Shown: positions 5,813-43,060, counted from the stretch's first letter. The stretch is DNA of 64,000 nucleotides from Takakia lepidozioides (GCA_030704615.1 CM060733.1:19220001-19284000), one strand, 5' to 3'. Numbers and translations are program-made. Notes: a model not told the origin generated them from the sequence alone.

Positions 5813-7111
5813 TTAAAGTTGGACTGAATGAATCCCTCCAGTTGGGACACTTCTGGACAATTTCGTTTTATTGGCTAGCTCTTCGTCAATGCGCTCCGAC
5901 CAACGTGGCCGAGCTTCCTTCATCTCAGAGATCCAGCTAAGTTGAGTTTTTGGGTCTTTGTACACCAGTAATACTTTTCTAATCATGCTTGCCACGGGAA
6001 GGTGCGGTAAGATGACCCGAAGGAATTTCTTAAGCTCCTCTGCACTGAACCAAAGACGGTAATAACTCACTTCACTAACCTTCCGGTCCTTCCGGACTCG
6101 TCGAACAGGTCCAACATGCGCATACACTTTCCAAACAGTTTCCAAGTACTGAGCTAAGAGTTGGACAGAATCTTTGTCAAAGTCGTCTGTGCTCAACACA
6201 CCTTTGCGGCCATTGGAAATAATTGATCCTTCATCGCACCACCAAATTGCCAAGGATAGCGGTGTCAGATGGTTCAACCATCGCCGGCGGATGAGGAGGT
6301 GATTATGGTCGTGTGTGACGTCATGAATATGCGTCAGGGCATCGAGGTCTCGGCTCTGAAAGAAAAGCTTCTTGTTGTTGCCAAAGTGCACAGAACTTTG
6401 TGCAGAGACTTCATGTAGTGCGCCTACCTTCCACCGAAAATATTCTTCTTGCGTATGGCTATGACGAATAGAGAACCTTGCGTTGTTGTCGCCTTTCAGT
6501 ATTCTCAGTGACCCATGTCCCAGAAGTGATCCTAAAATGATTGATTTCATCGAATCCGGCAAGGCTACTTGACTGAGTCTTTTTAAGTCCAGGTTAGGAG
6601 CTTGATGAACTGTGCCTGATGTGAGGTTGGCCAACCTGTTGCTCTCGTCTCCTACATTCTTCAGCAATGTAATTGCCTGTGTCGTTCTGTCAACCCTGTC
6701 GACTTGTATCTGCGGTGCAACCGTGCAAATCTCTTCCTCCCTCACACCGACTACTTTCGCTGGATCGATCTTCAGACGCCAACCCTGATCTGCAGTCGAG
6801 CTAAACAATGCAGCCGATGGCGCCAAAAGCGACCCCAGCCTCCTCTCAATGCCATTTTCCCCAAAATACCTACACCCTGGAAATGTGTCACTCTCACCGC
6901 CATCACCACTCTTCCATGTATGAAAACCCGAATCTCGTAGTTTCTCGACCCCTCCTGCACATTTGGAAGGCTGAATTCCCGAGTCAAAGAAACCCTGCTG
7001 CCCTGCAGTTGAAGGTTGCCTAAACTGTGTCCAAAACCCTAAACCCTGATTTCGCAACTCAGTCAACCTCAACGCTTGCTTCCTCATCATGGAATGCCGC
7101 GAAAAAAGCAT
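5813..7111 (-). CDS. Intronless double-motif LAGLIDADG (I-SceI-like/LAGLIDADG_2) protein with an N-terminal organellar targeting-like extension
   Basis: Intact 432-aa ORF. Motif 1 is IILGSLLGHGSL and motif 2 is LTPLSLAIWWCDEGS, with the typical intervening HS..QEEYFRWK and C-terminal LPHLPVASMIRKV. The N-terminus is Arg/Ser/Leu-rich. Confidence 0.85.
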   Translation of the reverse strand: MLFSRHSMMRKQALRLTELRNQGLGFWTQFRQPSTAGQQGFFDSGIQPSKCAGGVEKLRDSGFHTWKSGDGGESDTFPGCRYFGENGIERRLGSLLAPSAALFSSTADQGWRLKIDPAKVVGVREEEICTVAPQIQVDRVDRTTQAITLLKNVGDESNRLANLTSGTVHQAPNLDLKRLSQVALPDSMKSIILGSLLGHGSLRILKGDNNARFSIRHSHTQEEYFRWKVGALHEVSAQSSVHFGNNKKLFFQSRDLDALTHIHDVTHDHNHLLIRRRWLNHLTPLSLAIWWCDEGSIISNGRKGVLSTDDFDKDSVQLLAQYLETVWKVYAHVGPVRRVRKDRKVSEVSYYRLWFSAEELKKFLRVILPHLPVASMIRKVLLVYKDPKTQLSWISEMKEARPRWSERIDEELANKTKLSRSVPTGGIHSVQL

Positions 7112-9415: not shown

Positions 9416-10284
9416 GTCACCTAAAGCAGTTGGTCTACATGCTGCAGCCACTCTCATCAAAGACCACATCTCTGGAGATAACAATTTTTCTCGCTTGCCC
9501 TTGACCCTGAGCTAACAAGTGGGGTCTCACTACCTGATAATGAGCCCATCTACACAAAGCAAGGAATTACAAGTGTCACTGCTAATCATGATAAGAGAAG
9601 CTACACTAAGAACCCAAGCCACACTAAATAATAAGTGCTGAAACGTGATGAGTGGGAAGTTCCAACAAAAGCACCGGTATCCTCTAAGCATAAACGTGAT
9701 AGCTGAACATTACTTCTTCATGTCCTCCTAATTCTTCCTTCTTATTCTGCTGCTCTCTTAGTTTCAAATTTCCTTGTGTAAGTATACGTCTCTAGCTTCG
9801 ACACTCTTCTATCTGCTCTCTCAGTCGCTCGGTTAGTTTCTTTGTTCCCTGTACTTTCTGGTTATTGGGGCGGTGTCCTCTTTGCCAGGTTTGCATTTAC
9901 TAAGCAAGGTCGCATTTACTCTTGATAGAGTAGCAAGGTTCTTGTATTTACTGGCGGTGTGTGTGCCTCATGGTGTAATTCGAGGGTTTTAATTTTTTTC
10001 CCTCCAATAATCCAAAATAAAGTTAATCTCATGACCTCTGTCCCCTCCAACCCCTTGTCAAAAGGGAAACCCGTAAGCCTAGTTATCATTCCTGACGTGA
10101 CGTGCCGCTGACACGTCAGCCGTCACGTCCGACGTGCGTCACGTCACGTCGAATCCGGACGTTTCTCCATGTAATTTTTTTTACATTTGACTTTTACGAT
10201 TTACTTCTACCATTTGTAATGACATGGCAGCCACGGTGTAAAACAGACGTGGCCAATTATTAATATTTATTAATTCTTTTTAAA

Positions 10285-11065
10285 AATACGTCCGCATATA
10301 TTGGTGGTGGCATATAATTTATTATTTTTTAAATGAAGCGACCGCCCATATTGGCAGTCGCTTGTAATTTAATATTTTATTAAATTAAGCGACCGCCTAT
10401 ATTGGCAGTCGCCGGTAATTTATTAATTTTTAAATGAAACGACCGCCCATATTGGCGGTCGCTTGTATTTTAATATATTTTAAAATAAGTGACCACGGTC
10501 GACTGAAGTTTATTATGTTTTAAATTAAGCGACCGCCCAGATTGGCGGTCGCTCGCACTTTATTATATTATTATCATTATATATTTAATATAGCTTGTAA
10601 AAATACAGCGACCGCCACATAGCGGTCGCTTTAGTTTTTTTTTAATTTAACGACCGCCATTTAGCAACGGTCGATTATTTTTATTTTTATTCTTAAATAA
10701 AGCGACCACCGTTGTGGTAGCTTTTTCAGTTAATTTTTGTAAAATGCAGCGACCGCCATTTGGGGGCCGTCGCTATTTTTGTTAATAAACAATACAGCGA
10801 CCGCCATTTGGCGGCGGTTATTTGATTTGATTTTGATTCTTAAATTAAGCGACCGCCGTTTGGCGGTCGCTTACTTAATTTTTTTTTTTAAATGAAGCGA
10901 CCGCCATTTAGCGGCAGTCGTTTATTTTTATTTTGAATCTTGAATTAAGCGACCGCTAGTAGGCGGTCGCTTATTTAATATATTTTTAAAAAATACATCG
11001 ACCGCCATGTTGCGGTCGCTCTTCTTGTTTTTATAAATATAGCGACCGCCATGCGGCGGTCGCGT
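10285..11065. repeat. Array of about 15 GC-rich palindromes (AGCGACCGCC-N4-8-GGCGGTCGCT) at about 50-bp spacing with AT-rich spacers; resembles DNA-transposon subterminal repeats
   Basis: Units read directly at about 10337, 10388, 10438, 10528, 10607, 10649, 10701, 10748, 10796, 10848, 10896, 10948, 10997 and 11041. Confidence 0.9.
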
Positions 11066-11099
11066 GTTTTTTATTCAAAAGGGACGAATTCCCATTCAT

Positions 11100-12460
11100 T
11101 CAATGGGCGATTGAATGGTTGCCCATCCAAATGATTTTCGTTTGATTTCATTCTCTGCCACTATGTTCAACATACCATGTATCAGGTCCCGGACTAATAT
11201 GAGATCAATCGAAATTCATTTGATGGCTCAATGGATGGTTGGCCATCGAAATGATTTTGGTTTGCTTTGAGACTTGGCCAGTATGTTCAATGTACCATGT
11301 AAGAGGGCCTTGAGTAATATGAGATCAATCAAAATTTGTTCAATGGGCCAACGGATGGTTGCCCATCCAAATGATTTTCGTTCGATTTGAGACTTGGCCA
11401 GTGTATTCAATGTACCCTCTGATAGGTCCCAGTGTAATATAAGATCAATCAAAATTTGTTCGATGGGCCAATGAGGCGTTCACTTGTCATCTGGTTTTTG
11501 TTCATTGCGAAAAAAAAAAATCCTGCAATGCGTACACAGCTATTGCACCCATTCAACAGATGTGGTTGAAGCCCTTCTTTTGCCCGCATGTGCTTGAACT
11601 TGTGTGCAACACATGTACAGAGTCACAACAGACGAATAAATCATTTGCCTCTCCATCGACGCGCTCACCCCTCAAGCCATTCCAGAATTTAAATTAATTT
11701 TAAGCCAATAAATAGGTTTGCACTTGGGGTTTTTGGCACGAATCGATTTTGTTTTTGCCTCAATTTTGTTCTGCAGCTTCAAGCATCCCACCGCTACTCC
11801 CCCGCCAAAATTTGGACCAATAAAAAATGTCCCAAAAAAAAAGTGTTATCTTCGTTCACTATTGCAGAACTCTCTATAAATAGTGCAGGAAGTAGAACAC
11901 AAATCAAGTTTGGAGTGCAAAACAGGGAAGAAACTGTGGTTTTGGGTCCAAATGAATTTTGCTCGCTCCCAAATTTGGCACACACATTGCATATGGAGTC
12001 GTTACACGCCCCATTCAAAAACGGATTGAAAAAACATAAATCATGAGCACGCGAAACGCAGTCCAACAGGTCCCAAAGTAATAGCAAATCTAACGAAATA
12101 CATTCAACGGGTGAATGGATGGTTGCCCATCCAAATCATTTTTGTTTGCTTCCAAACTTTGTTAGTACGTTCGAGACACCCTCTCACAGGTCTCGGACTA
12201 ATATGAGATCAATCGAAATTTATTTGATGGCTCAACTGATGGTTGGCCATCGAAATGATTTTGGTTTGCTTTGAGACTTGGCCAGTATGTTCAATGTACC
12301 ATGTAAAAGGCCCCAGAGTAATATGAGATCAATCAAAATTTGTTCAATGGGCCAATGGATGGTTGCCCATCCAAATGATTTTTGTTCGCTTTGAGACTTG
12401 GCCAATGTGTTCAATGTACCCTCTGATAGGTCCTAGTGTAATATGAGATCAATCGAAATT
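11100..12460. repeat. Two blocks of three 120-bp tandem units (about 11100-11465 and 12100-12460)
   Basis: GATGGTTGCCCATCCAAATGATTTT...GAGACTTGGCCAGTATGTTCAATGTACC...GAGATCAATC recurs with a period of 120 bp. Confidence 0.9.
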
Positions 12461-13124
12461 ATTTTGTGCTTCGAGAACTTTGTGGGTATGTTTGTCATAC
12501 ATAGAAAAATCATAGATTTTCCGAAATGATTATGAAATACCCAGGGACCAGGCGAAATACCCACATATACGTCATGACCAAATATGACACCATTGTAAAT
12601 TTGTTTACAGGGTAAACCACTTCTTCCCCATCACACGAGTGTAAATGTGAAGAAAACGTTTCTCATGCAATTGAAATTGGCAGGTGCCGCACATGTGCAT
12701 TGTGTATTAACAAAATTGGTGATATACAAAATTGGCAGAATGTTATCACTGTGTTTTCCAACAATATTCAAGGTACAACAAGAATGCACATTGTCTATGT
12801 ATTACGCTGCTAGTCATTAAAAGCACTGTCCGAGGACAATGAATGTGATGTTGTGGCCTGATTTGCACTGCCAATACGAAGACCTTACGACCGTGATCTC
12901 GTAGTCAATGAGGGGCCCAATGGCACGTGATCAATTCTGGTCTGCATCCGCCTACTTCGCGGCGAAAGTTGACTTTCTTCTTCACTCTCACGACGAGGTG
13001 GATCGACAACAAGTGCTCGGGCTGCATGCAAATCGGCAACGAGGCCGTCCACATTCAGCAATAGAGCCCCCGAAACACGATGATAATGGTCTGTCCATAG
13101 TCGCCTCCATTGCTCTACAACTGC

Positions 13125-14296
13125 CTAGATGATACTTTTGAAACTTTCCAACTGCCTCTCGCGGGCCCTGTCCCTAATCATATTGTCGTTTCGACGATTA
13201 GTCACCTCGTACACCTCATTCATTCGGCATTGACATATTATAGCATCTTTCAGTTTGGACAACAACAAATGTCTCTCAATCGGTTCTCGGTCAAACAATT
13301 CGTTCTCCTCCGGCACCCATAGAACCTGTGGGAGCCGGATAAACCTCGACCTTCTCTGACTCCAATGCCCTCCCAGATTGTGGCAAAACTGCTCTCTCTC
13401 TCTCCCACCAATCAGGAATGCCTCCCGCACGTATGGTTATCTCCCAGTCAGATGTGACCCAGAAATATCGGGGATCTTTGACGTATGCCGGGTTTCCGGC
13501 ATGTTTGCCATGCATCTCTCTGTCTGCGTCCCATACCAAGTTCTTGCCCCAATGCAAAAAATTCAGGAATGTGAATGGTAGCCCATCCAATGGGAGGTTG
13601 TGTCGATTATATTCAAAACCTATGGGTAGCCGATCCTCCAAGCCCACCAGCTCATAGAAACGGCGATGGATTGGTGTACGACATTTTGGGCAAGCGCTTA
13701 TCCGTAAGGCTTGCGGGATAAGACATGTGAGATGGAACATATGTCCACATGATCCAACCGCATGACATCCCTCTGGGCCGTATGGATTCATGCACATCGA
13801 ACAAACTGTGTCATCTGATATCCACGACGGCAAAACGCGTCGTGGTATCTCCTCCCTCTGGGCCGGTTTGATGTGGCTGGTCATCCTTATTGTGGTGTCT
13901 CACTCTTCCTCTATCTCAAATTCCCAGTTTATGCTTCTGTTCGACCCCGAAATTTTGTGCTCACATCGATCGAACATAGAATCCACATCTGCCCAGTTGG
14001 TATACCCAGCGAACACGCTTGATGCGATGCGGAGATCGTTATATCTTTGCATGTTGGCATAAATGCTATCCACGCTACAGTTCGACATGCGTGCGACACG
14101 TTGCAAGTCCATGTCCATGACGTTTGTTCGATCCTCATTGTGGACAACAGTGCCTTCATTGTTTGGAGGCATGTTTTGCAATCTAGCTTCCAACTCGGCT
14201 ATACGCGGTGTTTGTCAGTCTAGTCGGTTCTGCAGGGTCCTAATTCGCTGGTCTCTTTCCGCCAGTTGTTCCTCTAACGTTGCCCCCGGTTGTATT
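13125..14296 (-). pseudogene. Coiled-coil plus RING-H2 protein gene, 3' half; the 5' half lies at about 23688-24150 beyond the retrotransposon
   Basis: RING-H2 CSMC..SCGHMFHLTC..CPKC in ORF 13291-13884. Removing the 14297-23687 insert and one TSD copy restores the frame ..YISDMFGI|QPGATLEEQLAERDQRIRTLQ.. The gene also has internal stops and frameshifts. Confidence 0.75.
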
Positions 14297-14818
14297 TGTC
14301 GTGCGCATACGTATCGCTACACAACTACATCGCTGTCTAAACTACACCACACATATATGGACAATAAAGTAGTCTGCCACAATGATAGAAACTTAGACTC
14401 ACACTGTTGACACAAGAACATGAAATACAACACCATCACTCGTTAAACTAAGAGTCGAGCCAGGGGCACCCCAAGCTATGGGGACTCCACCCCACAACAT
14501 CATATTCTCCCTTCATAAGCACACTCAGATTCTAAGCAGTGAAGGAGCTCGGTCGTGTAGGCTCAACTCGAGAGAGATGAGCCGCACGACTGACGCTCTC
14601 GTGAAGATAAGATGGTTCAGGTGTCAAGCTAAACTTGACACCTGACTTAACACTTGAACTAAATCCAAGTGTTAAATACAAATAACTAGCTTTATTCTAG
14701 TTAGTTTCACACTGTGTTTATTTAACTTGACAGCTGTCGTGCGCATACATCCACTACACAACTACATCGTTGTCCAAACTACACCACACATATATGGACA
14801 ATAAAGTAGTCTGCCACA
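14297..14818 (-). repeat. 3' terminal A-B-A repeat block of copy 1 (A 14735-14818, B 14383-14732, A 14297-14381)
   Basis: The two A copies match directly, and this B matches 23339-23687 with roughly 10 differences in 350 bp. The A/B junction is the palindrome GACAGCTGTC. Confidence 0.95.
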
Positions 14819-15078
14819 ATCGCCCCCCTAGCTGGTGGATAGGTCCCTCTAACTCCAGATAGCTACAAGATATAATAGCCACAGCCGTACTAAGTCCTCT
14901 ATCACTGTCCATATTATACTCAAACTCTATAGACCAAGAGGTTGGGTACAAGAGTAGCCCCATCGTTAGTCGTCGTCTTGCAATCTGTGAACTTGAGTCA
15001 GGATCTCGTGTGTTCAAGATCTCATAGTAGCTTGGCCTTGCATTTCTTGTTAGCCTTCCATGGTTGTATCCACTCCCA

Positions 15079-18000
15079 CTATCCAATGCAATGCGGACAT
15101 AACCAATCCCCATCAGGAACCATCTCAAGAGGTGGAGTCAAACAGCCCATATGCCAACCTCTAGAGCATCGATCACACACCAGCATGGTGGCTGCCCCTC
15201 TAGCAGACCCACACAACATGCACCTCAAACTTGCAGGTACCACTACCAGGTTTGGGTTAATCCTGCCATCGACATTCGGAAGGTGACATAGCGCACAATT
15301 ACGCACATGGTCCTTCCAAGTTATGTCATCCCGACCCTCCAAGATCAAGACGCCTGAAGGCAATACCTCTTGAACCCTCAAAATAACACGTCCTGCAGTC
15401 ACATCCAAGGTCGTAGGAGCAGTCTGCTGCAGATAAACATAGTCACCAGGGTTAAAATCTCCGGATCCCAGGACGATAGCCCCCACCACATATGGTAGCA
15501 TACCTCAACGTATCACGATGTTGTGCAATGGCAAGAGTCTTAAAAGCCATGGGCATGACTTTCTTGAACAACTCTGCACGCTGATCACATGCACGTGCCC
15601 ACACGTCCGGATCATCAAGGTTAAGAACTGTAGCATCTTCTCTACGAATGGATGTAGGCAAATCGGCTCTCGGCCAAAGAGAAGAAAGTATGGTGAGAAG
15701 GAGACAAGTGATGCTTGCTTGCTGAACCTGTAGCCCATGGCTAACCAGGATTACTGAAGGTCCCAATCTCCTAGGTGTCCCTTCTGCAAGCCATACTTGC
15801 GCAAACCCCTCTTTATTGTCTGAACAACCCTCTCTGCCAAGCCATCGGCCTCAGGATGATCCCGAGAAGTGGTGCAGTGGTCTACCAAGGCCTTGTCACA
15901 CAAAGCCTGATACTCCCCCAAGAACTCTCTCCTTTGGTCCGTGAGTACCTCAGCTGGAGCATAGAATCGGCTAAGTACACAATCCAAGAATGCATACGCA
16001 GCTCCTTCACTAGCCTTATCAGGCAATGGAACCAACTCGATCCACTTGGAGAAGTGCTCTACCATCACCAACACGTACTTGTTGTGGCGCATGATCAGTG
16101 GCAATGGCCCTGCGAAGTCAAGACTCCACCTGTAGCCCAATCCCATGATCGGAAGAGGGTGCAATTGTGGAGTAGGGGCGTTGAATGAAGCATGCACCTT
16201 GTCACACACCATGCACCTAGCCACAAATTGTTGCACCTCTGTGTGCATACCACGCCACCAATACTGCCCCTGAAGTAGACTATGAGTGCGTCGCACCCCA
16301 AAATGCCCCAATTCCTCATGGGCATGCCGCACTAACCGTGCCCGCTGTGTTGGGTGAGGCACAATCCTCACTCGACCATCCTCCCACATTCGGAGCAGGT
16401 GTGTCCCCTCCCACTTGAACCTCTTGGCTTGTTATAGGATCCGATCCCTCTCCTTGGCAGTCAGCGTGGTTGCCGTGTCTCCAGTGCGGAGGTAGTCCAA
16501 CACAGCTGAATCCTCATGTATATCTTTGGCGCCACCTTGCTCATTGCTGGCCTCAGGGTCCTCAGACAATATCTACAGTCATCCCTGTTGCTGGTCCAAC
16601 CTGGCCTTCCGCTGCTAAGATACTCAGAAATGCAGATGCATGCCATCCGGGCACCATCTCTTCGTCTGTCTCACCATGCCACCGAGCTCCAATGTCATCA
16701 TGTTGGCTCGTGCATGGATTGCGACTCAACCCATCTGCATCCCGATTGACCAAACCCGGTCGATGCACAACCTGAAAGTCATTCTCTTGAAGGATGAGTG
16801 CCCACCATGCAAGCTTCCCCGTAAGCTTGTCTGACTCCATCAACCACTTGAGTGGTTGGTGATCCATGACAAGGATGAAGAGATTTTCATATAGATAGCA
16901 CCTGAAGTGTGCCACGGCCCATACTGCAGCTAAGCATTCTCCCTCATATGACTTATACTTAGACTCTGCAGTGTTGTTCGAGCGGCTAGCATAAGCCACT
17001 ACAAACTCTCTTCCCTCATCATCCACTTGTGTGAGCACCGCTCCAAGCCCCAGCATGCTCCAATCTGTATGCAGCTGAAAATGACGCCCCCTGATAGATC
17101 GTCTCAAGATGGGCGCCGAGGTCAACCTTGCCTTGAGCTCTTGAAAAGCTTGTTCTTGCTAATCTTCCCACTGCCACTCCTGGTCCACCTTGGTCAGTTT
17201 GGTTAGAGCCTTTGCAATGGCACTAAATCCCTTAACAAACCGTCTATAATAGTTTGCTAACCCCATGAAAGCTCGAACTTGGCTCACATCAATAGGGCGT
17301 GGAATCTGTGCAATAGACTCTACCTTAGTCTACTGTACCCCCAATCCTCCAGGATGTATCATGTGACCCAGATACTCAATTTGGTTGTGGAAAAACTTGC
17401 ACTTCCCCGGATGTAACTTCAATCCGTGCGCCCTCAAGCGCTCAAATATCACCTGAAGATGTCTCTCATGCTCCTCCACTGTAGCACTAAAGACGATGAT
17501 GTCATCTATATAGCACCGAGCAAACTCCACCCCTGCTAGAATCCTGTCCATGACTCTCTGAAACTCTGCCGGAGCGTTCTTAAGCCCAAATGGTAAGAAC
17601 CGCCACTGGTATAGGCAATCCTTCCTGTGCTCATTGATCCCCCATAATGTTGTCTTCTGCTTATCCGCCTCCTTGATCGGCAACTGGTGATATCCGGATC
17701 GTAAATCCAAAGTGCTAAAGACCTTGGCATGCCCAATGGCATCAAAGATCTCCTCTGGTGTCGGCATGGCATACCTATCGGACTTGGTCTGACGATTTAG
17801 AGGCTGGTAATCACCGCACATACGTGTCTCTGTCCAATTGCCATAGACATCCTTCTTGGCTGGCATCACTGTGGCTGAAGCATACTCTCCCCCAGATAGC
17901 TCCACCAAACCAGCCTCCCAAAGGTCCTGAGTTCTTATTTGAATCAAGGACCTCTCCATGTCACTGTATCTATAGGGTCTCCGAAAGATTGGCGTGTCAG

Positions 18001-20222
18001 TAGCCAATTCAATGCAAATCTCTTGACCCTTCAGTGCTCCTAAGTCCTTCAAACAGAAGGCAAAGCAGTTCCTGTAAGCCCTCAAGAACCGCCGTATACG
18101 TCGTCTTTCTCCTCTGGTGACTATAGGTCCAACATCAGGCTCCCAGTTGTCCTCCGTGACTGCAACCTTGAGTCCAGCAGGCTTAGAGGTAGAAGACGCG
18201 TCCCGTGGTTGCTATGCTGCAACCTCTTGAGCAGTGACCACTGCCTCCTCTGTCAGTGACAATGTCTCATCCTGCCCCATCATCCCATCCTTGAGGACCT
18301 CCTCAACCCGAGAAAAATCCCCAACTTCATCCATCACGGCCGCCTTGGCTGCTAACTCCTTTTGAACCTCGAGCACCTCCCACGTGTGCCATGGATGCGG
18401 CCTACACCTTGTGGTCCTCACCTGTTCACCCCCACTCGCTGCCTATACCGTCTCGGTAGGCAGGGAGACCATCAAGGAAAGTGTACTCCGTACTCGGCGC
18501 TGCTCAGCCATAGCCAAGCTGATAATCCAGGTCAAGCAATTGAAATCCATTGCTTGCCCCAACACCTGACGACGTGATGCCTCAGAAAGAGATGGCATCG
18601 CCGTGGTACCAGTGGTAAAACCCATCGCCCGCTCGCGCTCGTCAGCATTGGGCTCCACTAATTGGTGCAACTAGCTAAACCACAAGAGGCCAGGTCCACC
18701 ATCCCGAAAAGCATGGGATCCTAGAAAACTGAGCAGTATAGGCAATGCGGCTCATGGGTGACCCACCTTATTGACCACTGCCAAAGGTGATCGGTCATCG
18801 TGTCTCACACGCTAAGACTGTCTCCCTATGTCCAAAATGCTATCAACCGTCAGGTGTGGTGGCTGCTGCACCCCATCAAATGCACGCTTGAGCAGTGCAG
18901 GTGGCATTAAGTTGGTCCACCATAGTCGTGGGCGATGAGCCCGTGACCCCACTGCTGCTGCATCCAGCAACACTGCTAATCCAAGCCAAGACCGCACTTG
19001 ATGCACACTGGCCATTACCTTGGCCCGAGAATCACCCCTTAATGGCACATTCTCCAAGATATATGCTGGAGAGTCTGTCTGCTGAAGTTGTAAATAACAT
19101 AGGACCCTCAACATTTCCCAAAACAGACGTGACCTTGAGTCGTGTAACCCATTGCCATGCCCGGCTCATGAATGCCCTTGGCAGGGCCAACCTGCCACTA
19201 CCAAGTGAATAGGGTCAACCCGTTCCAAACCATACGCCCCCAGCAAAGAGATGTCTGCTGGCAATGCTTGTTGGTATCCACGAACTGCAGACACTGGCAA
19301 CAAATCAGGGTACTGCTGCACCAATTGAGCAACATGGCGCAGTGAGACGCGTCGTGCAGTCTCATCCCTCTCCACATACAGGTAACGTCGAAGTCATACA
19401 CCTGCCTGCAGCACTGCAGCCAATCAAGTGTTGATTCCGCCAAACAAGTCCAGAAGGCATATGCCTTCATCCGGGCACTACCACACAAGAGGTATGGTGT
19501 CCAATGGCAACAACTAAGGTGGTCCTGGTGCAATCACCGCACTCTCCTCCTCTCCTGACGGTACGAAGGCCTCTATCCAGGCTTGTTGCACATGTCTATC
19601 AACAGCCTGATGCAAATCCTTGCTCGTACCCCACAATGGAGTGTGAGCAACCATGGCAGACAACTCCACCGTACCATGCATGTCATCCTGCTCTGCTAGA
19701 GGCGGCACATCCTCTGCATGGGCATTGCCCTCCAGCAACTCTCCAGGCCAACTAACTTCAGCTGTGAAGGCTGCTAGTGTTGGAATCTTGCCCCGCTGGG
19801 CAGCAGCAACACCCCCAATGAATGTCACAGGGAGTTGTACACGACGACCATCCTCTGACTGCCATCCAGGCCTGTAGGATGCTGACTCCTCCCAAAAATC
19901 CAGGGTGAAGCCCATGGGATATAACACTGCCCCACCAACGAGGACATCATAAGAGACCGCATCTGTCACAATGGCCTTGGCTCGCATCACTGAGCCATCT
20001 ATAGGATGATCCGGCTGTAGTCAAATGACCAACTCACGCCGTGTCATGCCCCAAGCCCGCTCTGATCCTCCCAGAGATGTCTATCTCGAAAGGACAAAGC
20101 TCCATATCTGCCTCCATGAGGCCCAAACTTGCAATAGCAGCTCTGCCCAACATCAATGGCTGAGCTCCGAAGTCCAACAAGACCCGTAGTGGCCAGTACC
20201 TCTTGCCTGCCGGTCCACTCAA
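15079..20222 (-). pseudogene. pol of copy 1: aspartic protease, C5 DNA methyltransferase, RT, RNase H, integrase, PHD
   Basis: Protease VLLDFGA; RT FSTLDLRSGYHQ, LPFGLKNAP, YIDDII; RH LHTDWS, YEGECLA, DHQPL; IN HHCC (HAHEELGHFG..CMVC), SLDFAGP, LTDQ, GLAER; PHD C4HC3. Many premature stops. Confidence 0.95.
18520..19469 (-). pseudogene. DNMT3-like cytosine-5 methyltransferase domain within pol
   Basis: Motif I LLDLFGGINT, II YVERD, III DI, IV VVAGWPCQGHS (catalytic PC at 19181-19186), VI YILENV, VIII AHRPRLWWTN, IX ERERAMGF, X RRQVLGQAM. Confidence 0.92.
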
Positions 20223-20416
20223 AGAGAAAATGCATCAACACCCCCACACCAAAATCCATCTGCAGTGCTGATCCTGCAGAACATCCCAGCCCAAAACCCC
20301 GGACTGACTGGCCTCCACCAAGAGAGGCTTTGGCAACTACAAGTACAAAGTAATGAAAATAGTAAAAAGAGGGAGGGGGAGAATAGAAGCCCGACCAAGC
20401 AAGATCTAATCCTGAT

Positions 20417-21161
20417 CTATGCTATCAACTGCCAGACTTCTCTCAAAGTGCCTCGCTCTGCATGATGGTAAGGTGTAGGAGGTATATCTATGTCTAGAAA
20501 CCTGTTACTAACCTTATCCCAAGCTATAGTAGCTCGCTCTAACCAACCCTCCTCCTCTCTCTGCCAGGTAGAGACAAAACAATATTCCCTTATCTCCCGC
20601 TCACTGAACACTAAAGAAAATAAAGGTAGGGTCTGACAGTCTCTCAACTCGAAAGCTTTGAGACGGTTGCGGGTGTCTGCGAATGATTGCATCTCCTTCA
20701 AGCAAAACAAACTTTTCATTGCTAATGAACCTCCGCTCGTGGTTGCCTCGTGTAGAGCGTGTCCGGTTGCAACCATGTCTGATTGCAAAAACTTGTGTAG
20801 CTCCTGCTCCTCTGCTCTAGTACACCACGGCCTTGTGGTTGAACACCTTGGTCCCCGGGGCTGTCTTTGGCTGTGTTCCAAGCCTAGCTTCCACCCACTT
20901 TGGTATTTCACCTACAGGTGCAGAACTGCTTGCTCCAATAGAGTTCTGACTGTCCAAAGCAATATTGAGGCCCTCAACGCCAACTACTGCAGTTTGTTGT
21001 CTATTGCTAATGTCTGACTCCCAGTATGCAATCAACTCGTCCAACTGCTCTCCACTCAAATCAGTCTGAGTTCCTTGAGAAACATAAATCTTGTCCCCTT
21101 GTGTGCACAGGCTAAGAGAAGAGACTTGCCCTTCAATTACGTCCTCATTTCCCCCAACCAT
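20417..21161 (-). pseudogene. Unidentified accessory ORF (two overlapping frames) in the 5' region of copy 1
   Basis: ORFs 20817-21161 and 20417-20911 overlap and read like a single frameshifted protein. No family recognised. Confidence 0.35.
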
Positions 21162-22290
21162 ACAAGGGGGACATCCCCAAATTTGTCTCTCATGTAGACC
21201 ACAACAGGTTCTAGAAACATAATTGTGGATCTTTCATAGCACACTCACACTCCATAGATTTTTAGCAGAGTCCAAAAAACTAAAACCAGGTCTAGATAAG
21301 TAGATTTCCCCTTTCTGCAGCTATCCCCCCAAAAACTGAGTCAAATGGAGTTCATTTGACAAAGATATGACCAATTAGGCTCCAAATCATTTAAATTAGA
21401 TCAAAAGGGGTTTTTTTTTTTTTTTAAACACCAAAACGTTCTCGCCATTAAAAACTGCTCCCAAGTCATCTACGAGTTCCCAACACGTCCATGTAGTTCT
21501 CACAGATTCCCTGGATTTCACCTACAGGTGTTTCAAACATACACCGGTGAACTGCTATGCTCCAGCCAAGATCTGTAGCTATGCCGACTCTGGGGCTTTG
21601 ATCCTTCGCATCCACTCCATCTAGCACACCCTTCCATGCCACACTTGACGTGCACATGCCTCAGGGAAGCAATCTGAACAACTCCAACTTTGACCACCCA
21701 CAATGAAATCCTTCGCTCTTCATCAGGGCTGCCAAGCTTCTATTGCAAGCACATGTAAATGAATTATGTGGAGCCTAAGTCACACATCTGCCCCTTCAGT
21801 TGATCACTTGTCTATCAAGGCATTTTCCCACACCTAAGTGGGTTATACCCTGTCTTAATCACACTCCCTTAGACCAGATTTCAGCCATGTCATCAGTCGC
21901 TCCAACCTAGCAAACCATCGCAGTTCATCTCTAACAGACCTCAATTACCTCTCCTCATACAATGCAAGGAACTAATCTTCAGAGGAACAAAATCTAACTC
22001 CTACCAACTCATCTAGCTCTACCAAGTTCTGCGCTTTTGCCTCGCCCAATCTGCATCAGCCCCCAGGGTGCAAAACATAGGGCGCACGCTTCTCGCAGAC
22101 TTATTCCAAATGTTGTGCCTCGTAACAATGCACTGCAAAATACCCTCAGATCATGTCATATGACCGAAACACCTCCCAAAGATTGCTGTGTTGCATTCCC
22201 TGAAACACTAGGCACACTAGTGCCCAGCGCAGGAGAGCCTTGGGAAAGTCGGCCATTCCCTGCAACTTACTGCCCGTTCTCCAAAGAGAT

Positions 22291-23013
22291 TCATCCGGTC
22301 CCAAATTTGCTTTCTAAATGCTGGAGACCTGGAGCACCGCCCTGGCCAGTTGTTGTCCCTGGCCGAGCATGGTCTAGAGGTTGCAGAGGTCCTGGTTCTA
22401 ACTTCACGTGTGTTAGCTGCGAGGCTTGCACAGGCAAGAGCTTCTTGTCTCTTTGCTTTCGAAGCTTCTTCTGACTGGAACCTAAGAGCTGAACCTTGGT
22501 CTGCAGGTCCGAAGATTGGTCTGAAGAGAGAGCAAGTGCAGATGGCAGTTGCCCACCAGGTTCTGACAGAGTATCATCAGGGCTTGTCCCTGCATTAGGG
22601 ATGGCTCGAGTGCTTGCATCACGGAAAAGAGAGCCTAAAACTGCACGCATACGTTGATGGTGTCTCAAACAGTACACCTTGGTGGCCATTGGTAAGAGAT
22701 TAACCTCAGTTGTATCATGCAGCTTCCCGCCATACTAAGGGTGATTATTGTTGGCTTTGAACTGCTGCAGCAACACTTCGAATGGTTTCCGCCTTCCTGT
22801 TACTGCCCGTTTGTTTGCTTCAGTGTGCAATTTACAGGTCAAGGATTGGCGACAATAGGCACCAGATTGCCCCGTCACCACCCCACAAAGCACATCTAGC
22901 TCCTCTGTTGTCAACAACTTTGGTTTTTTCCAAGGTGGTGATTTGGTGTCCGCCAGACTTGTGCTTCCTGGCCCCAGCCCTGCTCCATCCTCTCCTGGTC
23001 ATCCTCTCGGCAT
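22291..23013 (-). pseudogene. SCA7 (Sgf73/ataxin-7) zinc-finger cargo ORF inside copy 1
   Basis: LDVLCGVV..GAYCRQSLTCKLHTEANKRAVTGRRKPFEVLL matches the SCA7 pattern (D..CGV..C.RSLTCK.HS..RRAV.GR..FD.LL). One frame runs from ATG 23013 through ORFs 22735-22917 and 22291-22689, with two internal stops. Confidence 0.82.
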
Positions 23014-23326
23014 CCTTGCCAAGCTGACCCATAAGCACGACAACCGCTTCTCATTCGGCCTTCACTACTCGCACACCATACATATGGTCAGAATGAGTCT
23101 GAGTTCCTACTGTCACCACCAACCAAAACCAAGAGGCAGGAGCCCTCCTCTGATTGCTATGCTTCCCATGACCATTTATATACCCAGAAACCAGAGATGA
23201 TCGAAACCTGCATGTTTTTTTTTTTTGTTTTTTTTTTAAGCCTCTCAAACTAAGCACTACTTACACACAGATAATCATACAAGTGCTAACCCTCAACTCC
23301 TACCTTGCACTCACAGGTAAGAGATG

Positions 23327-23338
23327 ATCTCTCTCGAG
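23327..23338 (-). promoter_or_regulatory. Primer-binding site complementary to the element's own LTR (self-priming type)
   Basis: The sense sequence after the LTR end is CTCGAGAGAGAT, with no TGG. Positions 23327-23339 are a perfect 13-nt reverse complement of LTR positions 23521-23533. Confidence 0.8.
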
Positions 23339-23687
23339 TGATAGAAGCTTAGACTCACGCTGTTGACACAAGAACATGAAATACAACACCATTACTCGTT
23401 AAAGTAAGAGTCAAGCCAGGGGCACCCCAAGCTATGGGGACTTCACCCCACAACATCCTATTCTCCTTCATAAGCACACTCAGATTCTAAGCAGTGAAGG
23501 AGCTCGGTCGTGTAGGCTCAACTCGAGAGAGATGAGCCACACGACTGACGCCCTCGTGAAGATAAGATGGTTCAGGTGTCAAGCTAAACTTGACACCTGA
23601 CTTAACACTTGAACTAAATCCAAGTGTTAAATACAAATAACTAGCTTTATTCTAGTTAGTTTCACACTGTGTTTATTTAACTTGACA
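23339..23687 (-). repeat. 5' terminal repeat (B segment only) of copy 1
   Basis: TGTCAAG...CTATCA, 349 bp, matching 14383-14732 and directly abutting the TSD. Confidence 0.95.
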
Positions 23688-26569
23688 TATTCCAAACATG
23701 TCCGAGATGTACTCCAAATCGCATAGCATCCTTTCGTTCCTCCTACTAGCAGTAGTTTGTCAATTCACTGAACGTAAGAGTATGACCTCCACGTACAACA
23801 TGGCTGCCAAGGTGTACGGGATTTGGCCCTTTAAGATAGATTGATCCCACAATGTGCAATGCACCTCATTCGCCCTATGCTGGAAATGCAAGTTCGTGCA
23901 AGATTTGGACTCTGCGTAATTGTTTCGGGTTTGCACGTCATGCCTATCTAAATGCCACAATCGATTGATGTGGTACCACTTCACGAATTTTTTGCATCTC
24001 GCCATCGGCCACCTGAACTCTTCCGGAACATCCTCCCAGCCCTCTTCTGCTATGATGCTAGGGTCACCATATACTTCCTAATTCAAGTCTTGCCTTCACC
24101 ATTTGATTTTCCTAGGGGGCGGTCCATGTTCATTGGGATCATCTCTTCCATGACGCTCATCGTCCTGGCCCTCTGCCATTCTACAACAATTGGAGCAACA
24201 CTAAACGAGGTTACTAATAAGATGTAACTCTAAACCCTTAGCGCACTAAGTGTGAGCAGATTCCACTAATCGTGAGCAGATTCCCTTAAGTGTGAGCAGA
24301 AGTTAAGCGTGAGCAGAAAGTGGAAGTGGAGCGTATAGTCGTGGAAGAAGCATGGCCTATTGTCGTTGACGCAAACTTATGCCTATTGGAGGTTTACATG
24401 CCATGATGGGACCAAAGGCACCGACCTCCATGCCAGAAAATGTGGGATGAATGTGTACGAAGAACTTCTCGATGAACACGGTATTGTTGGCTGAATAATA
24501 CGTCGAGCATGTCACTCAGGTGTACTGTGATAGGGCCTGTTTTTAATGGAGTCCTGAAGTTGAAACTCAAACGCTCCCGCAGTCCCTCCTTTTTAGTGCT
24601 CGGGTTGATTTTTCGTGGTTGCCAATTTTTCCTTGCATGCTTTTGGCTGTTATAACACCATCACTGGGTTCAAGTATGATAAGTTCTATAGCAGAGTTTC
24701 TTCACACTTGAGCATATGTGCGGAGCTGCTTGGATGGTTTTCTTGCAGTATACACCTAGTCCACGACATCTGCTTCGTTGCTAGTATGCCAAAGCTGCAT
24801 CGCAAGGATAATAACCAGTAACTTGTCACTAGGTTGCATGGAAAAGAAAGCTTGTAAATATGGGCTAGATTGTGACTTGGTAATATTCTCATTCTGATCT
24901 GCGGTCTCTTTCGCATCTCTATTGTATTCATGGGCTCAGATGTTGAGCGGTGTTGAATCTAGTGGTGTGAAGGTGGAGGAGTTTGATTACCTGGACGATG
25001 GGAGAGATCAAGGCAACCAGAGTGTGGCCATGGTGGTTGTGGGTCTGATGTTGGCAGCCATGTGCATGATCAGCGGCCATGAGTAGACTTTTACTATTAT
25101 TATAGTGGATGGAATCCCAATTGGACAAGTCAGCCTTAATTCCAATCGAATGGTTCCTTACCCAGCTAATAACTTGACCATCACAATTGAACACTGCTCT
25201 CCAGATCATAGCCAACGCGACGCCAATGGGCTGTGGCGGCTACTTTGTGGCAAACACTTTGTGCATAGACAACCACTTCACACTTGGTGTCTGACACCGA
25301 TACTGTTGAGTGATGAACTAACAATTTGCCGAAGGCAGAAAGATGGGGCAGGCGCTGGTATGGAGATGCCACCAAGTAATGGTGGATGGAGTCATAGCTT
25401 GCATATATGATTCGACATATTGAAACAGAAAATAGCTATCTGGCTCACTTTGAAAGAGGGACCTATACACTGTCAGAGTTCAGATTGCTGAGTGAAGGTG
25501 CTGGAAGGTATGGTGAACTTGGCTTCCTTGAGTCTCAGCCTGCTTGCATTGTGGTGACACTATTAAGTAGCCACTTAATTAATACGTGTTAAAGAATGTA
25601 TAGAGATATGTGCAATCAGCAGATTTGAGCTCTGGGGCAAATTATGAGGCAAAGCTGGTCGATCAGAAGTTGGTTAGAAGCTGATCAGAAGGAGAAGCAT
25701 GAGCTGCGGCATGTTTGACCACCGATAGAGGCATAGCAGATGTGCACAAGGAAGGACCAGCCACGTAGCAATAGCCTGCTCTGTGATCAAGTCTTGCATC
25801 AGGTCTAGGCGATCGCGTTAATGTTGTGAGACATGGTGAATCTCATATAACGTTGCGGGCCTAGTGAAGGAAGACCAGGTTGCTCTTGGGGTATAGGCCA
25901 ATGGTCGATGAAGGTACTAGCACCACCTTGGAAATCACGAATTGAACGTGGAGATGGTCTTATTGTTGTGGCTGATATCTACTGCCCAACAATACGTGAA
26001 TGGTTGCAGAAAGCCATCCTGGTTGTGGTCACTGTGTCATGCAAAAGTCATGCCACAAAGCCGAAATGAAATAGGGGATAAATTGAACCACAGGAAATAG
26101 CGTATCGGATGGAGTTTGGCAGCCCGGCAGGTCATGCAAAGGGACGTTGGTTTGCAACCTGCAGCCACTTAGGTTGTCCAGCCGTAGCTAGCTAGTGATC
26201 CGTATGTGTGCCGTCTAGCATGAGGCTGTTGGGGTACTGGCATTACAAGATGGGATGATCTGTGGCAGGGCAGGAGACGGGGTCCATCTTATACAACAAC
26301 GATAACCTTGCATTGATCGCAACAGCTTGAACAAGGTGTTATCATTCTGGAACTTGGCATACCAATGAAGAGATTACCTTTAGCATGGTAGTTCCAGTCT
26401 GGAGCGATTGAGTTGAAAAATCTAAGATCGTCATATTTCAGATATGAGCCAGGCATGAGTCCAAGGAATTCTTAGGAAACCAGGGAACAGGGAACCAAGA
26501 CAAGTTATTGAAAATAGATTTTCCCCTGTATTTGTTTATTTTTTAAAGGGTGCTATGTTTAAAGAGCCT

Positions 26570-29542
26570 GGTTGGTCATATCTTTGTCAAATGAGCTCCG
26601 TTTGAGGCAGTTTTTGGGGGGATAGCTGCAGAAAGGGGAAATCTACCTACTGGTTTTAGTTTTTTGGACTTGACCAAAAATCTATAGAATTTTTCTAATG
26701 TAAATTAGATCCTCCCCACATGTATTTGAGGTCTATTGAAGAAGCTGTTTCAAGTTAGGGTTGATCACTTAGCTTTCTGTTTATAACACACCTGTCACTC
26801 TTTAACATTAGTGTATGGCTAGAGAGGAAATGGAGAGTGTCGGGATGAGGGCATGCTAGGGTTAGGAATTTCTTTAGTCTCTCCTTCCCATAGCTTCCAC
26901 CCTCTCGGTAGGCCAAAACCTTTCCATAGGTGGAGACAAGAGGCAGTCCGGGTTTTTGGGCTGGGGTATTCTGTAGGAGCAACACCACGAAGGTGTGGGG
27001 GTGTTGATGTTTTGATTTCTTGTGTTTGGATCCCCCCCACACCTGCATGCTTGACTGTGCGCCATGTTGGTTTTGTGTGGGCGTTTGCTTTCATAGGGAT
27101 TAGGCCGGAATTGATCACTGGTCAATCCTAGAGTATGTTGTCGGTGATGAGGCTGGAGTGATGACCAGCAAGACCACTAGTGTTTTTTCTATGGTGAGGC
27201 TGGATTGATGACTTGCCAACCATATGAGTTTTTGCGGTGGATGCAGTTGCAAGTGCCCTTAGCCACTGGGATATGACCCTTGAGCCGCAACAGGTGCCCA
27301 CCCGTGTCATTTTTGAACTTCTTGTAGAGCCTTATAGTGACACACTGGGGGAGGTGTGGGTTGTGAGTGTCATCACGGAGTTACCCAAGGCTTATGAGAG
27401 GAGTGCAGCTACAAGCAATAGAAGTGACAGTGGGTTCACGAGGCGAGGGGTTTAGTTTAGACCACCTTCATCTCCACCCTCAACCGGTGCAGAGTCTAAC
27501 ATAGACTCGGAGGCCTCATCAACAGGTGCGCAGTTTCCTTCGCCATTGTTGTGGGACGACATGGAGGGGATGTATGGAGCTACCAAGGGGCCTTGTTGGT
27601 ACTCTGGGGCTGTGGGCACAATCGAGCTGGATGACTTTATCCAGGAGTTCGATAGCTGATGTGATTTGTAGCAGATGTACAATCCACAGCTGTTTACCCC
27701 ATTCATGGCGTGGAAGGGACTGTTCCAACATTTGGAAGGCCCGCCTATAGATTATTACCACGAGTTTAGGCAAGGACACGAAGCAGAGATTGAGGAATGG
27801 AGAATGTATTGGTCACCTGACTACGTCTCCATTACTCGAGGTACGACGCGACCAGCAGCTGCATCAACACCAACGTCTCCAATTGCAAGCACTAGTAGTA
27901 GGACAAGTGGTACATGAGCTGGGAAATCCACTCAAGCTCCGTTGTAACACCAGCACTCGTTGTTGTCTTCAACCCAGTGGTGGAGTTTTTCCAGGAGTTA
28001 AGGAGGAACTACCAAGGAGTACGGACAAAGAAGCTGCGAAGTTTGCAAGACTTTCAGCACAAATCCAGTGAGAGCTTGCGAGAGGCCTACACTCGTATGA
28101 GGCGCTTGATAAGTGTGACCCAAGGGGTTAATGAAGCTCAGGCAGTCTAGTTCTGGTATGGAATTTTGGACAAGGAGCTCAGGAGAAGGGAGCGGGATGC
28201 AACCCTGTTATAAGCAGCCCAACCCACATTAGCAGATGTATTTCTGCTGGCTGAACGGATTGAGCTCAATATGGTGGAGGAACGAGTTGTTACCATTGGA
28301 TTTGGCAAGGACATGCTTGCACGAGGCGCAGCTACTAGCCAACAGCCTTCGGGACTGCCCAACAGCGTGGTCAGGGGGGCAAGGTTGCCTAACCCAAATT
28401 CCATGGAGCTTATAGGGGACCTCAGGTGTAGAGGCCAGTAGCTTCTTTTGCAGGCAAACAGCAACCAGGGGTGGTGTATTGGACATGTGGAGGACCCCAT
28501 GTCAAGAAGGATTGCCCAGAAAGCGGCAAAGGGCCGGCACAAGCACAGCCTGCACAGTTGCAGTGTGGCCATTGTGGTAAGTATTGGCATGGAGAGACAT
28601 TGTTATGACTTGCACCCTGAGTTGCGGCGAGGCCAGTTCCAAAGGAGCAATGGTGGCCGAGGGCAAAATGGAGATGTGGAGGTTAGGGCATTCACCAAGG
28701 CATGGCCAACCGGCTTCAGTAGCTAGAGCAAAGGCTTGCTGCCATGGCCACAGCTCAGGTGGTACCGGCTCCAAAACCTGAGGGTCCACCTCTTATTCCT
28801 CCTTAGCAGCGTCATCCTGATGGAGGAGACATGGGAGGCATGGGAGGTATGGGATTTATGTGCGGGGTAGTACTCGGAGGACCACTTGTAAAGGTGGATT
28901 CTGCTACAGTTGTGACTTGAGGAGCAGTACGAGTTCATGATCCACGAAGTACAGAGGTGGAGTTAGATCCACAGCATGGGGAGGCAAGCCGTCAGGCCAG
29001 GCTGCCTCAACATTCACATTGGCGGAGACAGTGTCGACGCCATCTATGGCACCTAGTTCTCGCCCGACGGATACCGAGGCGGAGGTTATTGTGCCCTTGG
29101 AGGGAGCCACACGAGTAGCACCAATACCTGCTGCCAAGGCTAGTGCAGCCAGTGTGCTGCTGGGGGTGGCCACATCTGTATGTCAGGCCCCATTGTTCTC
29201 GGCGACCATGATTGGCCTAGAGAATTGCTAGAAGACAATGCTCATGCAGAGGATGTGCCACCTTCAGCAGAACATGATGTATGCATGGTATGGCGGAGTT
29301 GCCTGCCATGGTTGCTCACACTCCATTGTGGGGCACAAGCAAGGATTTGCAGCATGCTGCTGGTAGACTGCAACAAGCCTGTTTAGAGGCATTTCTACCG
29401 TCAGGAGAGGAGGAGAGTGTGGTAATTGCACCAGGACCACCTTAGTTATCACCATTGGACACCACACCTATTGTGTGGCAGTACCCGGATGAAGGCATCT
29501 GCCTTCTAGACTTGTTTGGCGGGATCAGCACTGGTTTGGCTG
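26570..29542 (+). mobile_element. Copy 3 of the DNMT-gypsy family: degraded gag, an internal deletion, and truncation in DNMT motif I; 5' limit uncertain
   Basis: 26570-26690 is the reverse complement of about 21260-21375. The gag matches copy 2 (LFTPFMAWKGLFQHLEGPP) and retains two Zn knuckles (xWTCGGPHVKKDC; CGHCGK..H..CYDLHPE). The homology ends at EGICLLDLFGGISTGLA. Confidence 0.85.
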
Positions 29543-42800: not shown

Positions 42801-43060
42801 TGGCAGTGGACATAACTGGAGGCAGCTAACAAGACATGGGAGGCCAAGCTCATAGGAGTCAATACATGAGATCCCAAGCTCAAGTTCACAGGTTGCAAGA
42901 CGGCGACTAATGATGGGGCAACTCTTGCACCGGCCTCTTGATCTATCGAGTTTGAGTGTAGTAGGGATAGTGGTGGAAGACTTAGTGAGGCTATGGTCAC
43001 TATCACATCTTGTGGCTATCTGGACTTAGAGGGACCTAAACACCAGCTAGGGGGGGCGAT

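Follow-up and report, generated by a model that had tools for sequence, protein, structure and literature searches.

We analysed a 64,000-nt window of the Takakia lepidozioides genome (GCA_030704615.1, CM060733.1:19220001-19284000), which contains an integrase-encoding long terminal repeat (LTR) retrotransposon whose repeats are split between its two ends. The window is the whole stretch of DNA analysed, and element coordinates count from its first letter. The copy that is central here, copy 1, occupies 14297-23687 on the minus strand. Direct reading and repeat finding give its order, in element orientation, as TATT, B, primer binding site (PBS), body, polypurine tract (PPT), A, GC, B, A, TATT, where A and B are segments that each occur twice and TATT is a target site duplication (TSD). 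The original prediction of a split-LTR layout with a TATT duplication and a palindromic A|B junction at 14293-23691 was confirmed by these readings. The features of copy 1, in window order, are as follows.

14293-14296 (no strand): TSD TATT on the 3' side of the element, identical to 23688-23691
14297-14383 (minus): outer A (A2), whose end ...CGCACGACA is an integrase-type right end; 93% identity to A1 by repeat finding
14384-14732 (minus): inner B (B2), starting with TGTCAAGTT; 97% identity to B1 by repeat finding
14566-14578 (minus): self-primer motif ATCTCTCTCGAGT within B2, complementary to the PBS
14729-14738 (no strand): palindrome GACA-GC-TGTC spanning the A1|B2 boundary, presumed to serve as integrase attachment site; each half equals one outer end of the element
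14734-14733 (minus): GC dinucleotide leading from A1 to B2, by direct reading
14735-14820 (minus): inner A (A1), ATTGTGG...CGACA, immediately 3' of the PPT, by repeat finding and direct reading
14821-14831 (minus): PPT CTAGGGGGGCG, by direct reading; the motif adjoins A in copy 2 of the window, in the L003 family and in Marchantia
15088-15222 (minus): PHD finger, C-terminal in the pol region (PF00628, E 3.6e-11, in the open reading frame at 15082-15501)
15754-16389 (minus): integrase, with H2C2 zinc-binding domain (PF17921, E 1.6e-16) and DDE core, rve (PF00665, E 2.1e-12)
16565-17125 (minus): RNase H of Ty3/gypsy type (PF17917, E 5e-32)
17333-18085 (minus): reverse transcriptase (RT; PF00078, E 7e-33)
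18302-20225 (minus): protease and DNMT3-like cytosine methyltransferase region, degenerate and with broken frame (tblastn with residues 698-1320 of ORF1 of the relative L066, 39% identity, E 4e-109)
20226-23326 (minus): leader and presumed gag region, degenerate, without a Pfam match in a search of its open reading frames
23327-23339 (minus): PBS ACTCGAGAGAGAT, perfectly complementary over 13 nt to a motif in B (putatively self-priming)
23340-23687 (minus): 5'-terminal B (B1), TGTCAAGTT...CTATC, with an integrase-type left end, by repeat finding and direct reading
23521-23533 (minus): self-primer motif within B1, complementary to the PBS
23688-23691 (no strand): TSD TATT on the 5' side of the element, by direct reading

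The two copies of B are 97.1% identical to each other, and the two copies of A are 93.1% identical. Between A1 and B2 lies the palindrome GACAGCTGTC, the two halves of which are the exact outer ends of the element; the sequence GACAGCTGTCAAGTT has two exact matches in the window and four with at most two mismatches, against 0.21 expected. At the second junction, B|A, the two segments abut exactly (CTATC|ATTGTGG), the left part matching the PBS side (CTATC|ACTCGAG) and the right part the PPT side (GGGCG|ATTGTGG). Removal of the element had also been said to restore a reading frame, and on each strand one frame is indeed open across the emptied site, that of the plus strand for about 79 + 50 codons. 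This is weak evidence, and the case for the duplication rests far more on the related copies described below, in which 8/8 have perfect 4-bp TSDs.

The body of copy 1, about 8.5 kb long, is degenerate and its frames are broken, with the RT, RNase H, integrase and PHD finger still recognisable. A near-intact relative, L066, has two open reading frames (ORFs) filling the internal region: ORF1 encodes an aspartic protease and a C5 DNA methylase (PF00145, E 1.8e-13; L066 3793-4233), and ORF2 encodes RT, RNase H, integrase and PHD finger. Among PDB entries, the methylase matches DNMT3A/3B best (E 2e-7), while ORF2 matches Ty3 Gag-Pol best (7q5b, E 4e-98) and then the integrase of prototype foamy virus (PFV). 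Other relatives encode the same domains in intact single polyproteins of 2350 amino acids, some of which include a CCHC knuckle. Searches of the window ORFs and of the intact relatives L066, P0140 and P0142 revealed neither a tyrosine recombinase (PF00589) nor any further integration enzyme, and both integrase domains (PF17921, PF00665) are present, as the original prediction of a DDE integrase in place of a tyrosine recombinase had it.

The pol domains follow the Ty3/gypsy order of protease, RT, RNase H and integrase, with the DNMT domain inserted between protease and RT. The DDE integrase with its H2C2 zinc domain, the short TSD and the TG...CA termini are all found. From the order DIRS the element shares the split direct repeats, but neither the tyrosine recombinase nor TSD-free integration. 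With the Gypsy-DNMT3 elements of streptophytes it shares a Dnmt3-like C5 domain within a Gypsy polyprotein, as well as the combination of DIRS-like repeats with Gypsy domains. On these features, we classify copy 1 as a degenerate copy of a streptophyte "Gypsy-DNMT3" Ty3/gypsy retrotransposon, with gag, protease, DNMT3-like methylase, RT, RNase H, DDE integrase and PHD finger as its predicted products.

Two further observations concern these proteins. The PHD finger at the C-terminus of the integrase occupies the position of the chromodomain in chromoviruses, where it may direct either integration or the DNMT to certain types of chromatin. Copies with the DNMT3-like domain in Marchantia polymorpha are annotated as ordinary hypothetical proteins (MARPO_0008s0049 and others; L099-L102).

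Layout and ends across the family

For a broader view, 102 loci of relatives were gathered, with the A and B reference segments for the metagenome loci taken from L003. The nearest named relatives of the integrase belong to M. polymorpha, and many more come from moss-associated metagenomes. The 3' layout PPT-A-(GC/AC/AT)-B-A|flank is found in about 13 independent metagenome loci, and the split layout recurs in L003, in a distant GC-rich lineage (L095) and in 4/4 copies of the M. polymorpha reference assembly GCA_003032435.1 (L099-L102). Overall, over 20 independent loci with differing TSDs carry the layout, and they represent at least five diverged lineages in several assemblies. Two complete identical LTRs around PBS-body-PPT were found in no copy examined; instead, the 5' end carries B only and the 3' end A-GC-B-A. 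The Astrephomene locus L094 has no recognisable repeats and is uninformative, and the Marchantia draft-assembly loci L001 and L002 suffer from gaps and decay, the B|A junction of L001 following a run of N and L002 stopping directly after A.

The insertion ends are uniform. Perfect 4-bp TSDs flank 8/8 scorable complete copies of the full form (TATT, AAGG, TCTC, AATC, AAAG, ACCG, ATTT and AATT), each with a chance expectation of 1/256. All 21 independent 5' ends read flank|TGTC-B-PBS, and the ends are TGTC...GACA without exception among these and about 40 3' ends, in none of which a PPT-side or PBS-side terminus serves as the insertion end. This agrees with the termini that had been forecast from copy 1. 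Segment A was located solely beside the PPT or beside B in the loci examined, and neither canonical AB...AB copies, nor B-A-B-body-A copies, nor free-standing A or B-A units were found in 100 loci. The palindrome is kept in copy 2, L003, L095-L102 and L011, with the consensus ...CA(C/T)GACA-GC-TGTCA(T/A)G..., and its halves bear the short TG..CA inverted termini typical of integrase substrates.

The original prediction had allowed for two other permutations, with opposite outcomes. The mirror form, B-A-B-body-A, was not seen at any of the 21 independent 5' ends, and its count among complete copies is 0 against 9 of B-body-A-B-A (binomial p about 0.002). The short form, B-body-A, was seen: about 22 loci end directly after A1, with five perfect TSDs (L038, L044, L056, L070, L079), two with one mismatch and one locus without a TSD. 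These copies could reflect a deletion between A1 and A2 or a direct integration product. The full-form locus L060 (7613-8263) and the short-form locus L070 (12297-12501) share a 3' flank that is 99% identical over 6.9 kb, with bodies only 91% alike; the pair represents either a polymorphic deletion or a chimeric assembly, and skipping of the loop by the assembler is a real possibility. In the better assemblies, comprising the window, the Marchantia reference genome and the draft locus L001, the full form is present at 7/7 3' ends. The frequency of the B-body-A form is consequently best treated as unreliable.

Some observations on individual loci stand apart from this tabulation. In L095 (9340-9400 and 18330-18380), a young full-form copy lies within an older related element, exactly at the palindrome of the latter; its left flank reads ...GACAGCTGTC|TGTCAGG, and its right flank is the older B minus the first TGT. 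The family's own palindrome may be a preferred target, or head-to-tail joining may be responsible. Near-exact tandem duplications, 1000-1005 bp long, are present in L099 (2547-4551 and 15757-17756) and L101 (13269-15269) of the Marchantia reference assembly. One of them covers the PPT-A region of an element, and they look like artefacts of assembly or gap filling.

Reverse transcription, junctions and a proposed route to integration

The priming sites define the repeat of reverse transcription. In all lineages the PPT immediately precedes A, and the sequence adjoining the end of B is perfectly complementary to a motif that B itself contains. This pair co-varies across three lineages:

Window: PBS ACTCGAGAGAGAT, motif ATCTCTCTCGAGT, 13 nt
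L003 family: PBS ACTCAAAGAAC..., motif ...GTTCTTTGAGT, 10-17 nt
L095 (9937-9960): a pair unrelated in sequence to the other lineages, 24 nt

The repeat set by reverse transcription is A-GC-B, which runs from right after the PPT to right before the PBS, as had been proposed from copy 1. Integrated copies are therefore circularly permuted relative to it. The complementarity of the PBS is the signature expected of self-priming of the Tf1 type, and in an RNA fold from the motif to the PBS the two pair (minimum free energy -78.3 kcal/mol, z -3.2). Transcription would start inside B, at the self-primer motif, because in the L003 family this motif lies 31 nt downstream of a TATAAAG box. In the same family the PBS sequence is repeated immediately 5' of the motif, and the two form the hairpin CTCAAAGAAC-nnn-GTTCTTTGAG.

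Within a copy, A1 resembles A2 and B1 resembles B2; between lineages, the segments are unrelated in sequence or length, and they form no positional clades. This pattern indicates that both members of each pair are regenerated from one template at each transposition. A nearest-neighbour analysis of A1 and A2 in the L003 family, a radiation too old and star-like to be informative about pairing, likewise gave no positional clades.

The two junctions differ in character. At B|A, the last base before the PBS abuts exactly on the first base after the PPT in the window and in the L003-type, Marchantia, L095, L097 and L098 lineages. Exceptions occur in 2 among about 14 loci: one added nucleotide in L025, and a filler of about 17 nt in L027/L032 that partly repeats nearby B. 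Such a pattern fits the expectation for blunt end joining of complete cDNA termini. The idea of an end-joined junction is thus retained from the original prediction, while the extra T of its CA-T-TG parsing becomes unnecessary with an exact abutment. The A|B palindrome shows no indels, only changes of GC to AC or AT. A substitution of the same kind, G to A, is found at B|A in ...CAG|TTG, and the substitutions at both junctions fit deamination at CHG (CAG/CTG) sites. Furthermore, the termini of reverse transcription, A(G)TTGTGG...TTTTC, do not resemble inverted repeats of each other, whereas the palindrome halves TGTCATG and CA(C/T)GACA are similar to each other and have the normal look of integrase ends.

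From this evidence, it is very likely that the integrase acts at the palindrome inside the repeat and not at the cDNA ends, and also very likely that B|A represents the joined cDNA junction between the unique 5' (U5) and unique 3' (U3) regions. A possible cycle can be outlined as follows. The TATA box and the transcription start would lie in B alone, so that the lone 5' B would suffice as promoter. The RNA would run through the body, A and GC into the second B, giving the normal R-U5...U3-R form, where R is the terminally repeated region, with the downstream A-GC-B supplying U3 and R. Self-primed reverse transcription would yield AB-body-AB cDNA, whose U5 and U3 termini would be joined blunt, as a 2-LTR circle or an equivalent joined intermediate. 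The integrase would then cleave the PBS-proximal palindrome after CA on both strands. Cutting GACA-GC-TGTC in this way leaves two CA-3'OH ends with 2-nt 5' GC overhangs, the form of a processed integrase substrate, and integration of the permuted linear molecule would produce B-body-A-GC-B-A. The choice of palindrome would have to be directional. In one candidate scheme, the palindrome of the left LTR is cut on linear cDNA and the outer ends are then joined within the complex; in another, the polymerase stalls, or makes an end-to-end template switch, at the last-made strand. Taken as a whole, a Gypsy-DNMT3 element with joined U5-U3 cDNA and a directional integrase cut at the PBS-proximal palindrome is the explanation we favour, with somewhat better than even confidence.

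Several points weigh against this explanation. A symmetric 2-LTR circle predicts the mirror form in equal numbers, and it is represented by 0/9 complete copies and 0/21 5' ends. A closed circle has two identical palindromes, of which only the PBS-proximal one is used, hence the need for a directional step. Faster decay of the mirror form is a poor excuse for its absence, which extends to four young Marchantia copies. The B-body-A copies all come from short-read metagenome or draft assemblies and may in part be artefacts. The circles, the cleavage by integrase and the RNA ends (transcription start and polyadenylation site) are all deduced from sequence.

Circle-like contigs do not help in this regard. 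L096 (1-18357), a contig named as circular, consists of 2.2 tandem units of 8262 bp with one A-GC-B per unit; L066 also has one LTR per unit; and L097 (8281-9315) and L098 (8505-9528) read body-PPT-[A-GC-B][A-GC-B]-PBS-leader, with tandem repeats that are 100% and 99.8% identical, respectively. We rejected these four 1-LTR and 2-LTR contigs as evidence for extrachromosomal circles, and with them any direct backing for the integration of a circle as originally suggested, since cycles in the assembly graph give the same paths, and are equally expected, when B1 equals B2 and A1 equals A2.

The one-sided pattern would also be obtained if the ends were made by the polymerase. Minus- and plus-strand synthesis would stop at the palindrome during the final strand displacement, and the recessed ...GACA-3'OH ends would give B-body-A directly; the extra B-A would arise when the plus strand switches from the right to the left cDNA end and copies A up to the palindrome, a step that is inherently directional. 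This scheme would account both for ends only at the PBS-proximal palindrome and for the five short-form loci with perfect TSDs, without a circle. However, it is purely inferential, the short-form copies are perhaps assembly artefacts or later deletions, and a switch of template from one end to the other is usually marked by microhomology or extra bases, in contrast to the exact junction of nearly all copies. We regard it as unlikely.

A literal circle was closer to what the original prediction described: host end joining would close AB-body-AB cDNA into a covalent 2-LTR circle, and the integrase would cut either palindrome at random. The exact B|A abutment with its rare filler, the identity of the palindrome halves with the element ends, the 4-bp TSDs and the in vitro precedent of integrase cleaving palindromic junctions all speak for it. 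However, random choice predicts B-body-A-B-A and B-A-B-body-A in a ratio of 1:1, and the observed 9:0, with its four young Marchantia copies for which loss by decay is unlikely, makes a symmetric circle quite improbable. The use of the palindrome, by comparison, is well in line with the data.

A scheme like that of DIRS and Ngaro elements would dispense with end joining altogether. The RNA would read through B2|A2, the junction and A2 would simply be inherited, and the internal A-GC-B would only template the termini. The architecture is formally identical to the split direct repeats A1-body-B1-A2-B2 of Ngaro/PAT, A is UG-rich like the far-upstream polyadenylation element of plants, and AATAAA motifs lie at the start of B in copy 1. 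Against this, there is no tyrosine recombinase and TSDs are present; the functional PPT and the co-varying PBS exactly flank B|A in every lineage, as expected of a junction that is made anew again and again; A1 and A2 look like products of a single template; and the indel and filler variants are found at B|A and not at A|B. Such inheritance seems very unlikely. Finally, an origin outside transposition, by secondary rearrangement, a nested independent element "A" or misassembly, has nothing in its favour other than the a priori rarity of such layouts, and is scarcely credible: the TSDs differ among the over 20 independent loci that share the layout, these loci span at least five diverged lineages and several assemblies, the Marchantia reference among them, A stands only beside the PPT or B, and there is no canonical copy.

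Returning to joined U5-U3 cDNA with a directional cut, a more specific version can be put forward tentatively, at somewhat less than even confidence. The obligatory integration substrate may be joined U5-U3 cDNA opened by a DDE integrase at an LTR-internal palindrome, which would represent the abandoned "circle junction" pathway of Panganiban and Temin (1984) in nature, supplemented by a directional step that always selects the PBS-proximal palindrome. As recounted in PMC11054761, Panganiban and Temin placed the circle junction inside the genome of spleen necrosis virus to argue for this route. The integrases of PFV and human immunodeficiency virus type 1 cleave palindromic LTR-LTR junctions in vitro, according to the work cited as refs 1-4 in PMC2884000.

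Second copy and neighbouring sequence

The window contains a second, diverged copy of the element on the plus strand, whose 3' end has the same layout as copy 1.

43047-43743 (plus): 3' end of copy 2, by direct reading and repeat finding
43047-43058 (plus): PPT
43059-43236 (plus): A, followed by GC
43233-43242: palindrome
43239-43564 (plus): B
43565-43743 (plus): A, followed by the flank AAAC

The body of copy 2 extends from about 37569, its pol is 89% identical to that of copy 1, and its 5' end is absent from the window. The A and B sequences are quite unlike those of copy 1, with an A of 178 bp compared with 86 bp. Just upstream of the start of homology, at 36299-37345, stand G-rich tandem repeats with a 10-bp unit, GGGCTGTGAC, and higher-order periods of 42, 75 and 93 bp, in the place where the B and PBS of copy 2 are missing. 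Most of the DNMT region, corresponding to residues of about 300-1157 of L066 ORF1, is missing at 39072-39536, which indicates an internal deletion. Degenerate telomere-like repeats of the plant type (AAACCCT variants) lie at 43860-43895, about 120 bp downstream of the 3' end. A third, gag-related fragment of the family is found at about 26.5-29.5 kb, with 37569-39060 matching 26823-28275.

Other sequences in the window are of varied character. About 1.8 kb separates the insertion site of copy 1 from a satellite-like block of tandem repeats at 10273-12517, whose periods are 50/100/147 bp and 120 bp, and an ORF with a RING finger (13294-13884, minus strand) begins about 410 bp from that site. 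Between the retroelement copies there is a DUF7869 ORF (34647-35294, plus strand). An ORF of 432 amino acids at 5816-7111 (minus strand) carries a LAGLIDADG_2 homing-endonuclease domain (E 4e-30) amid otherwise nuclear-looking DNA. Its neighbours are long intron-free ORFs for an amino-acid kinase (3519-4958, plus strand) and a vacuolar sorting receptor fragment (1027-1896, minus strand), and the region of the LAGLIDADG_2 ORF may be an organelle-derived insert.

Known systems and significance

Retroelements with a DDE integrase are textbook examples of integration from linear cDNA ends, and split repeats are treated as a hallmark of tyrosine recombinases. TOC1 of Chlamydomonas, a classic retroelement with an LTR split between its ends, is regarded as a non-autonomous element of DIRS type that depends on a tyrosine recombinase. 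The Ngaro/PAT elements of the order DIRS resemble the family described here in their A1-body-B1-A2-B2 repeats and in an internal junction that equals the joined termini. However, they encode a tyrosine recombinase, produce no TSD and, in the prevailing view, enter the genome as a circle through site-specific recombination, whereas the window family combines a DDE integrase with 4-bp TSDs, TG..CA termini and both a PPT and a PBS of classical type.

The LTR-LTR circle junction of retroviruses is similar in its two-fold symmetric CA...TG sequence, where a cut after CA on each strand yields ends competent for integration. In retroviruses, however, the palindrome arises only once the cDNA ends are joined and the actual substrate is linear DNA, while in the window family the palindrome is encoded inside the LTR and the joined ends (B|A) are not palindromic and, as far as the copies indicate, not cut. 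Tf1/sushi elements and the plant Tcn1 clade, compared by features, share a PBS complementary to the presumed 5' end of the transcript and not to a tRNA; self-priming has been predicted for the plant Tcn1 clade (Neumann et al. 2019, PMC6317226). They differ in having ordinary LTRs and a chromodomain in place of permuted LTRs, a PHD finger and a DNMT.

The closest known element by description is KnitGypsy-Dnmt3 of Klebsormidium nitens, for which the legend of Fig. 4c in de Mendoza et al. 2018 (PMC5890265) gives DIRS-like repeats (A-coding-B-A-B) together with Gypsy domains. Both have a Gypsy pol with integrase, a Dnmt3-type methylase in the polyprotein and DIRS-like repeats. They differ in host, an alga as opposed to the liverwort-type lineage, Marchantia and moss-associated metagenomes here, and the 2018 description, as given with that figure, includes no TSDs, palindrome, mapping of PBS and PPT, or mechanism. 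In the literature searched for split or permuted LTRs in integrase elements, this legend was the only hit; the name KnitGypsy was found in no other paper, and a 2026 preprint uses the term "streptophytes (Gypsy-DNMT3)". The layout is thus not as undescribed as first supposed. No account of how an integrase element acquires it was found in the same literature, and the mechanism is left unexplained with the figure. As far as we searched, the new findings are the liverwort and moss-associated occurrence, the 4-bp TSDs, a conserved palindrome as presumed attachment site, the exactness of the U5|U3 junction, a putatively self-priming PBS, the PHD finger and the strictly one-sided permutation.

These findings extend Gypsy-DNMT3 elements to land plants: the DNMT3-like methyltransferase in the Marchantia copies means that they are not confined to the Klebsormidium lineage, contrary to the suggestion of the 2018 paper. 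Standard LTR finders, which seek two identical flanking LTRs, would miss or mis-annotate such elements. The directional choice between two identical palindromes poses a concrete mechanistic question, and M. polymorpha, whose young copies are 93-100% identical in their repeats, offers a tractable model for the use of joined-end or circular cDNA by an integrase in vivo. More generally, an integrase element appears able to use an internal palindrome stably as its attachment site, in a family that ranges across liverworts, a distant GC-rich lineage and, by literature report, a charophyte.

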